Shown piece after piece: positions 44,601 to 47,600 of a stretch of DNA of 64,000 nt. The translations under genes and the position numbers were made by a program. Origin of the DNA: Oopsacas minuta (Eukaryota; Animalia; Porifera); assembly GCA_024704765.1 (NCBI GenBank), contig JAKMXF010000111.1:62001-126000 (forward strand). Reading direction: 5' to 3'. How positions within the stretch are numbered: the first letter of the stretch is position 1; every line of letters begins with the position of its first letter. Under the pieces are notes generated by a model. That model saw only the letters and a program-made list of their open reading frames with translations, did not search any database and was not told where the DNA came from.

Positions 44601-47600
44601 AACGTCCTTCGCTTCTGTTTAATTCGTTCAACTTCTCCATCAGTTGCATTTACCTTCCCAAGAATTCTATATATCTCAGCTAGTTTTAGATTTTGTATAT
44701 CGTCCTCAATTAAGTATGGAAATTCAGAGTATATTTTTACATTACTGATTGAAGTCATTATTTGTTATTTTGAGTTTTGTTTGTGTTTACTCTATATTTA
44801 TAGATGTTTGAGGCGTGAAGGCGGACTTAGAATCGAAGAACATACATTCAGGGATAATTACTTTCAGTATTTGAGAGTTATGCTACCATCAAACAGAATA
44901 TATTATAGTTAATTTGGAAATTTGATAATTTCATTTTCGATTCTAAAATCAGTTAACACCAGGGGCGTATTTGAAGGGGGCTCCAGGGGCTCCATGGAGC
45001 CCCCAGTCGGAGCGCCACTGAACCTCGTCGGAGGAAAAAAGAAGGGGTATTTTTTCTCCATCTTATTTGTTGTTGTTTAAAAGATATGATTAATTCAAAT
45101 TTTTGATATAGTGATTTACGTAATATACACTCCCTGGCCAAAAGTACTTGAAAGCTTTTGAGCCACTTGTGGTACAAGAGGTACATAGTAAAATGCTTGG
45201 GCCACTTCCTATGGTTCTTGAATTATAGAGGATATATTGTTAGAACTACTATTGGATCATATAAAGTTACAAATATACTTTTTAAGTTATTTCAATGTAT
45301 GTACGTAAAGTTGCAAATGAGTTTAAGCAATTTGCCACCTGTACCACATGGCGTCATAAGTTCAAGTACTTTTGGCAAGGGAGTGTATATAATATCTAAT
45401 TAGTAGTAGAAAATATATCAAGATGTCAACAAAAAGACCCGCCAGTGACAGACATAAAGTCAAGTGTCATGAATGCGACTTATGTTAAGGAATGACAATA
45501 TATATATTTTGACTACTTGAGATTAAAAAACTTGATTTTGTAAACTTTAGCTTAAATTCTTGATTATCATTAGTTTAGTCGGAGGAATTTACGAAAAAAC
45601 TCGTCGGAGCTGAAGTTGTGGAGCCGCCTCCTTTGTTTGGGGCCCTACGCCCCTGGTTAACACTATGTTAACAGTATGTAGTCAAATCTTTGCAAGTCTA
45701 TAATCAAAATCAGTAAGGCCAGTACAATACAAGCTTGCAGTCTTAAAATGACCTTACTTTTCAGATTATGTTTATAATACATTAATGCTTACTGAATAAG
45801 ACATTACGTCACTAAATACGTCTTAAAAAATTACAAAAGGTAAACATATATTTCAATAGACCCTCAAACCCCAAGGATGTTCAAATATAGAAATAATGAT
45901 TGAAGATAAATGCTTTCTGTAACAATAGTTGTATTAAATAGTATTCTGGATTTTCAGGTATTTGTATTATGTAATACAGGTATAATGAAGAAGGGAATTG
46001 AGAATTCTGTACACTGAATATGGCATATTATCTGCTATTAATTATCGCAAACTAATCTAGTATTCTGAAAATCACTAATAATACTATAGGATAAAGTCGA
46101 AGAGATTTTCATTTGTTTACACCCTCAGATAGATAAAACCCGAAGTTAGAAAGACAAAAAATCGATTAGTTTGTATAGAAAATTCGAATAAACAACTTAT
46201 GCACTGACTAGACGGCAAAAAACGATGGGACAAATGCGTCAGGTCGCAAAACAACAGATTTCAACTGTTTGAAATTCTATATGAAAACATATATACAAAA
46301 TTTAATATTATTATGAACCCATAGTATACTTGATCAAAATCAAGCTAATAAACTATAGTAAAATTTAATGAGCTATCGCTTCTCGGCCTTTTGGCTAAGA
46401 TCAAGTGAAAAATACTGTTCTTATCAGTGTAATAGCTGATAGCCCTCTACTTGGGGGCAACTATTACAATATTTTTTTTCCACGGGAAGGCAATTTGAGC
46501 TTGCTCGAACCTTTCTACGGGTTGCACTGGTATTGCACTAACTTCCAGTAGCGGCCCACTTTCTTATAACAAAAAAAATAATTAACTTGATACTTCTTCA
46601 TACATATTTACGACTTATGGCCTTATAAAGTATTTCTAAAGTTGCATAAATTTGGCAGCTTAGTTGCATCATATCATATATGTTTGATATTAGAGTTATA
46701 ATATGCTAATTTGTAATTGTATTGTCCATTAGGTAATTTCCATGATGTTTTTCTTTCATCAAAGCACTAATAGAAATACTTCTTTTGATACCATATGATA
46801 TACTGACAGAGAGGAAATCATTTAATTATGAGTATTACTTTGAAAAATTTCAGTGTTGCCAGATGAAATATCAAAAATGAAAATTAAATTGAAATTTATT
46901 GCAACAGATCTGAATAGTTATGCTATGTCATTGTGCTAATACTAAAAGTTCATAGTTCATGAACTATAAAATAAATAAATAAACATTGTTCTTGATCTGG
47001 CAAAACTGTTTCACATTGGATTCGCCCTATGCCTCATGTCCCAACCCTTAGAAGTCACTCATATATATATATAACCTCGGAATTACGGTTTCGAATAAAT
47101 TAATGTTAATACATTACCCAAAAGTTGATCTTGCAAGCCTTCAGAAGTAATCATAAAATTCAACAAAGTTACTTTGACAGATGTCTCTGGCATGTAATGA
47201 GGATTACGTAGTTTAGTAGTCATGTAGAATCTGAAATCTTTCGAAAACTCAATTGTCGAGTCACCAAGGCGAATACATAGAGTACCTCCCTGTTTGAAAG
47301 TTTGTTTCAAGAGCAGGGGTTCTAAAATCGGGTCCAATTCCTCTCCAATATTCTCCAGTAATACAGGCGTACCGAATTGTATGCAATTCTCTAGGGTACG
47401 TACGAAATCTGGATCCGTCAATTTGATAACATGAAGATTTTTGGATTTTTCCTATAAAAAGAAAAATCTAAAATTACAATCTGTGCCGACAGCATAGCAT
47501 ATTAATTGAATGGAACTAGACACTATAGCACTATTTGGCACTATAAATTGGAGGCACTAAGTGTATTGGTGTTAAATTTAACATTCTATAATGCATCAAA

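Follow-up and report, generated by a model that had tools for sequence, protein, structure and literature searches.

A U2 snRNA with an A-run in place of the GUAGUA branch-point reader is conserved at orthologous loci of eight sponge assemblies

Results

A U2 snRNA gene with a rewritten branch-point recognition sequence

We analysed a 64-kb stretch of DNA (hereafter the window) and found in it a full-length U2 snRNA gene, copy A, in which the branch-site reader GUAGUA is replaced by G followed by five A's. GUAGUA is the near-universal branch-site reader in U2 and is among the most conserved RNA stretches of eukaryotes; we know of no other animal with a U2 of this kind. We consider it probable, at roughly 60%, that copy A is a working hexactinellid U2, probably the one that this lineage normally uses, whose preference has shifted from UACUA-A-y to UUUUU-A-y while the reading of the branch site has been kept. 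The gene and its recognition sequence are located as follows.

46375-46564, + strand: U2 snRNA gene copy A; 143.6 bits against RF00004; 91-95% identical to eight sponge orthologues
46407-46414, + strand: rewritten branch-point recognition sequence, by direct reading and Rfam alignment; letters invariant in nine orthologues

Copy A matched the Rfam model RF00004 over its full length (model positions 1-192) with an E value of 2.2e-29, and its score compares with a gathering score of 46. U2 was the sole family reported for copy A in the Rfam scan with clan competition, and U12 snRNA was not reported. The Rfam alignment places the end of the gene at 46564, so that the end at 46560 given in the first-pass annotation, which had been made from the letters of the window, was 4 nt short. 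Nucleotides 1-33 (46375-46407), the region that pairs with U6, agreed with the RF00004 consensus at every conserved position, and stem-loops I, IIa, IIb, III, and IV were present by RF00004 alignment or by folding. The U6-pairing 5' end and stems IIa, IIb, III, and IV are thus intact, as had been claimed. Stem-loops IIb and III are separated by a stretch that contains an Sm-site candidate, AAUAUUUUUUUUCC; this candidate is U-rich, and the letter that follows it is C rather than G.

The recognition sequence of copy A reads CAAGUG-AAAAA-UA-CUGUUC, whereas the consensus reads CAAGUG-UAGUA-U-CUGUUC. Direct reading and the RF00004 alignment agree on this point and confirm the earlier claim that an A-tract (AAAAAUA-CUGUUC, 46408-46420) replaces GUAGUA. 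In U2 numbering, G33 is at 46407, A34-A38 are at 46408-46412, U39 is at 46413, the inserted A is at 46414, and CUGUUC occupies 46415-46420. GAAAAA at 46407-46412 therefore stands in place of GUAGUA with three of the six letters changed (U34A, G36A, and U37A), and an additional A follows U39. Judged by its sequence, copy A is a U2 in all tested features except the recognition sequence, and it is a variant rather than a canonical member of the family.

The host dynein gene and a second U2 copy

Copy A is one of two U2 genes in the window, both of which carry the A-run and both of which are nested within an axonemal dynein heavy chain gene, antisense in its introns.

38631-63814, - strand: axonemal dynein heavy chain gene, about 4017 aa, with at least 29 GT-AG introns, in the right 40% of the window
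43928-47117, - strand: host intron of copy A, 3190 nt, with the U2 gene on the opposite strand, by exact spliced alignment to the annotated 4017-aa protein P0509
58141-58330, + strand: U2 snRNA copy B, a diverged paralogue; 111.6 bits against RF00004; 76% identical to copy A
57910-58631, - strand: dynein intron with copy B antisense, by Pfam hits and spliced alignment

Copy B has the same change in its recognition sequence, including the inserted A, but its run consists of six A's. Its stem-loops IIb, III, and IV fold despite their altered sequence. No copy B was present in the corresponding dynein intron of L003 and L004, two of the loci fetched for comparison, and the copy is therefore not syntenic in a relative. 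The P0509 dynein clusters with that of Vazella pourtalesii (Hexactinellida, Rossellidae) and was 91.5% identical to a transcript of this species over 1495 aa, which indicates that the host is a hexactinellid (glass sponge).

Several other features of the window and of the fetched loci were recorded. A single-exon gene at 7680-8342 (+ strand) encodes an Arf-family GTPase of 220 aa, whose orthologues (74-82% identical) were confined to the sponge assemblies that also supplied the dynein loci; outside them, the best matches were at most 49% identical, and one orthologue shares a contig with the dynein gene of a relative. These comparisons suggest an Arf paralogue that is specific to the lineage and has kept its synteny. 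A multi-exon gene for the large subunit of ribonucleotide reductase lies at 19884-25304 (+ strand), and a GCN2-like gene with an RWD domain, a kinase, a HisRS-like region, and an unusually long exon of 764 aa lies at 28919-35327 (+ strand). At 28354-28548, each strand gave weak, below-threshold matches to MIR6140, and these point to a probable palindromic element, e.g. a MITE-like hairpin. At L011, the dynein locus of a relative is flanked by PIF1 helicase-like open reading frames and an LTR retrotransposon with reverse transcriptase, RNase H, and integrase (1-1232 and 17241-20117).

Conservation in other sponge assemblies

We fetched the orthologous loci from seven other public sponge assemblies using the dynein exon proteins as handles. 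The comparison covers eight assemblies (the window and seven others) and nine orthologues (the window gene and eight others). At every fetched locus that spans the intron (L005-L014), a U2 gene scoring 131.8-148.9 bits was present in the same dynein intron on the opposite strand. The substitution, which the first-pass annotation had proposed to look for in related genomes, was thus found at the orthologous loci of the seven other assemblies, and CAAGUG-AAAAA-UA-CUGUUC was identical in nine of nine orthologues. U2 positions 1-70, the A-run included, were invariant in the nine genes, and all 30 variable columns fell within positions 71-190. By this conservation, the A-run is under selection as strong as that on the U6-pairing region.

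Against one relative, the U2 gene of copy A was 92.7% identical, the 65 nt upstream of it 63.6%, and the far flanks 30-45%. Exons of the dynein locus were 75-84% identical at the DNA level to those of the same relative, and the introns gave no alignment. The changes seen in stem-loops IIb, III, and IV across ten genes were one-sided or compensatory, and the pairs were kept. Three further conserved blocks flank the gene.

46317-46328, + strand: distal promoter-like block A.CCATA..ATA (-58 to -47); at least eight of nine orthologues identical in its columns, the neighbouring DNA not
46339-46352, + strand: proximal promoter-like block ATC.A..T.ATAAG (-36 to -23); conserved in at least eight of nine orthologues
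46571-46582, + strand: A-rich block 7-18 nt past the U2 3' end, a possible 3' box; its A's unchanged or almost unchanged across the ten genes of the alignment

The promoter-like and 3' blocks were identified by their conservation. Copy B carries AAACCATA at the same distance as the distal block of copy A.

The first-pass annotation had suggested that copy A may be functional. The location within one dynein intron, which all eight assemblies share, the invariance of nucleotides 1-70, the conserved upstream blocks, and the kept stem pairs support this suggestion, and copy A behaves as a functional U2 under selection.

Word shares in sequencing runs were 0.38-0.63 for runs of other organisms, including runs guessed by index as RNA, and 0.13-0.19 for labelled sponge metatranscriptomes. 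Both ranges fit the identity blocks of the orthologues, across the A-run. Pattern scans of genome and viral contigs for an A-run U2 gave no match. Two metagenome contigs that matched the A-run pattern (L001 and L002) proved to be chance matches and not U2.

Predicted branchpoint-interacting stem-loop

46402-46417, + strand: predicted branchpoint-interacting stem-loop (RNAfold)

We folded 46396-46425 using RNAfold. The predicted stem-loop contains the pairs C28-G, A29-U, G31-C40, U32-A (the inserted A), and G33.U39, and its loop consists of exactly five A's. The energy was -3.7 kcal/mol for copy A, a weak fold with a z score of -1.4, versus -2.0 kcal/mol for the consensus stretch. C28, A29, G31, and U32 are the residues that were mutated as stem partners in the human branchpoint-interacting stem-loop, and in the toehold model the flipped-out nucleotides of the loop first pair with intron positions -2 to -4 (PMC13019295). 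Because the inserted A provides the partner of U32 in the predicted closing pair, the insertion looks compensatory, keeping the stem-loop that would present the new reader.

RNAalifold also paired AAAAAUA.CUG (46408-46420) with CAA.UAUUUUU in the Sm-site region (46466-46478) in all ten genes. This predicted pairing could be a self-masking helix or a mere by-product of an A-run facing a U-run.

Intron tests for a matching branch site

In the 25 introns of the window, UUUAY occurred 20 times versus 12 in shuffles (p about 0.01), and this enrichment was not repeated in 22 introns of a relative (47 introns in total). The best-complementarity score equalled that of composition-matched shuffles for both the GAAAAA and the GUAGUA reader. 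A larger set was assembled from 138 non-redundant dynein introns of the eight assemblies. In this set, UUUAY peaked with its A at -25 to -11 from the 3' splice site (58 matches versus a background of about 4 per 5-nt bin). The motif exceeded the Markov expectation by a factor of 1.35-1.5 (z 2.5-3.3), whereas the 138 introns showed no enrichment of CURAY (9 observed versus 13.5-15 expected). Single A's within U-runs were found at 1.14-1.23 times the expectation, rising to 1.67 times in the -25 to -11 zone. The U content of the last 25 nt of the sponge introns was 44-49%.

The control consisted of 35 dynein introns from Schistosoma mattheei, Apostichopus japonicus, and Elysia crispata, which we take to have canonical U2. 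UUUAY was found in 36% of the sponge introns and 26% of the control introns, which are not distinguishable (p 0.32), and CURAY was found in 5% and 6%, respectively. Since the controls did not differ from the sponges, the UUUAY peak was not counted as covariation. The intron evidence is compatible with a model of U-rich branch sites and does not discriminate. In regard to the re-targeting to a U-rich branch site that had been suggested from the letters of copy A, the UUUAY peak and the unenriched CURAY in the 138 introns speak for it and the indistinguishable 35 controls against it; the suggestion is plausible.

Runs of five or more T were depleted near the 3' splice sites of sponge dynein introns (window and L003-L013) to 0.26-0.41 of the expectation, despite a T content of 44-49% in this region, and T-runs interrupted by one G were 2.7-4 times over-represented in the intron interiors. 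Two different dynein introns of L003 (14607-15257 and 15687-16067) share AACACCACTGTAT at their ends, and some k-mer scores are inflated as a result. The shared AACACCACTGTAT points to a short repeat located close to 3' splice sites.

Discussion

Proposed mechanism

We propose that, in the free particle, the five A's would form the loop of the branchpoint-interacting stem-loop, where the inserted A would restore the closing pair with U32. On the intron, the A's would pair with a U-run that surrounds the bulged branch adenosine or directly precedes it, and G33 would pair with the pyrimidine after the adenosine. In the standard register, intron positions -5 to -1 lie opposite U2 positions 38 to 34, and position +1 lies opposite G33. 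The branch-site consensus of animals is degenerate, yUnAy (PMC2367711). The two most important contacts with yUnAy would be unchanged in the A-run U2, since A35 would still meet the U at -2, and G33 the y at +1. Because A35 and G33 are unchanged, the core reading would be kept and three flanking preferences would move to U. The preference would shift in this manner from UACUA-A-y to UUUUU-A-y without abolishing the reading of the branch site, and a U-preferring reader would suit introns as rich in U near their 3' ends as those of these sponges.

A broader claim is that an entire clade within the glass sponges has the A-run U2 only, the GUAGUA reader having been replaced by an A-run in the loop of the stem-loop; we regard the odds on this as even. 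If this is the case, the clade would be the first such animal lineage known to us, with a changed branch-site code (U-run, A, pyrimidine), and co-adapted SF1 and SF3B proteins would be implied.

Alternative explanations

The branch site could be chosen by SF1, U2AF, and SF3B, with the pairing of U2 being irrelevant, in which case the stretch would have drifted to A's and been kept as a loop or spacer. No intron motif separates the sponges from the controls, as this explanation would have it, and animal branch sites are already degenerate (PMC2367711). An unconstrained stretch should vary, however, whereas the A-run is identical in nine orthologues, and copy B, for all its divergence, differs in the A-run by one extra A only. 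The inserted A, moreover, looks compensatory for the predicted stem. We therefore consider relaxation of the reader unlikely.

It is less likely again that a canonical GUAGUA U2 located elsewhere carries out bulk splicing and that the A-run U2 is a specialised variant for a subset of introns or for spliced-leader trans-splicing. Hexactinellids are among the listed trans-splicing groups (PMC7986045), and trypanosomatids pair trans-splicing with a U2 without GUAGUA (PMC4950102). Against this explanation, both U2 genes in the window carry the A-run, and about 300 kb of fetched sponge loci contained no canonical GUAGUA U2. Other trans-splicing animals are known to retain canonical U2, which also counts against it, and nothing found ties the A-run U2 to the trans-splicing of hexactinellids. 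The earlier idea of a U2 dedicated to a particular type of cis- or trans-splicing is thus not supported; the A-run in both copies is more in keeping with a general U2.

Some sequencing technologies are prone to errors in homopolymer runs, but a homopolymer assembly error or a dead retro-copy is refuted by the comparison across assemblies, given the identical letters in eight independently assembled orthologues, the same A-run change in the diverged paralogue, the syntenic position, the conserved upstream blocks, and the absence of a poly-A tail and of truncation.

Significance

Models of branch-adenosine selection by the spliceosome are anchored on GUAGUA. A natural and long-lived replacement in an animal would constitute an evolutionary experiment on the weight of U2-intron pairing when branch sites are degenerate. 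The A-run U2 would also show how readily a changed loop can be accommodated by the branchpoint-interacting stem-loop and by the toehold model, and it bears on a possible co-evolution of SF1, SF3B1, and PHF5A with U2. It may also serve as a ready-made natural orthogonal U2 and as a marker of the glass-sponge clade.

Comparison with known systems

Our literature search found no paper that describes sponge U2 recognition sequences or an A-run U2. Copy A resembles canonical metazoan U2 (RF00004) in its length, its 5' 33 nt that pair with U6, its stem-loops I, IIa, IIb, III, and IV, its candidate U-rich Sm-like site, and its putative promoter layout of upstream elements. It differs in having GAAAAA instead of GUAGUA and an inserted A after U39, and the predicted loop of the stem-loop comprises A34-A38 instead of G33-U37.

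Trypanosomatid U2 is shortened, whereas the sponge U2 has the full animal architecture, with stem-loop III present, and conserved upstream blocks of its own. Both are natural U2 without GUAGUA, and both occur in trans-splicing organisms (PMC4950102; PMC7986045 for hexactinellids). In Leishmania, transcription of the U2 gene relies on RNA polymerase III and tRNA-linked elements (PMC4950102).

In engineered orthogonal U2, altered recognition letters direct the RNA towards branch sites that match them, and preservation of the stem-loop is required (PMC13019295). The proposed sponge U2 would be analogous in that redirection by the recognition letters is combined with a kept stem-loop. The engineered molecules are laboratory constructs that act beside normal U2, whereas the sponge U2 is natural, fixed, and conserved within a sponge clade.

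The expressed U2 variants known from human and insects differ mostly outside the recognition sequence. Like copies A and B, the variant U2 genes of human and insects (e.g. PMC8457000) are multiple copies with sequence differences; unlike them, both U2 copies of the window differ within the recognition sequence itself.
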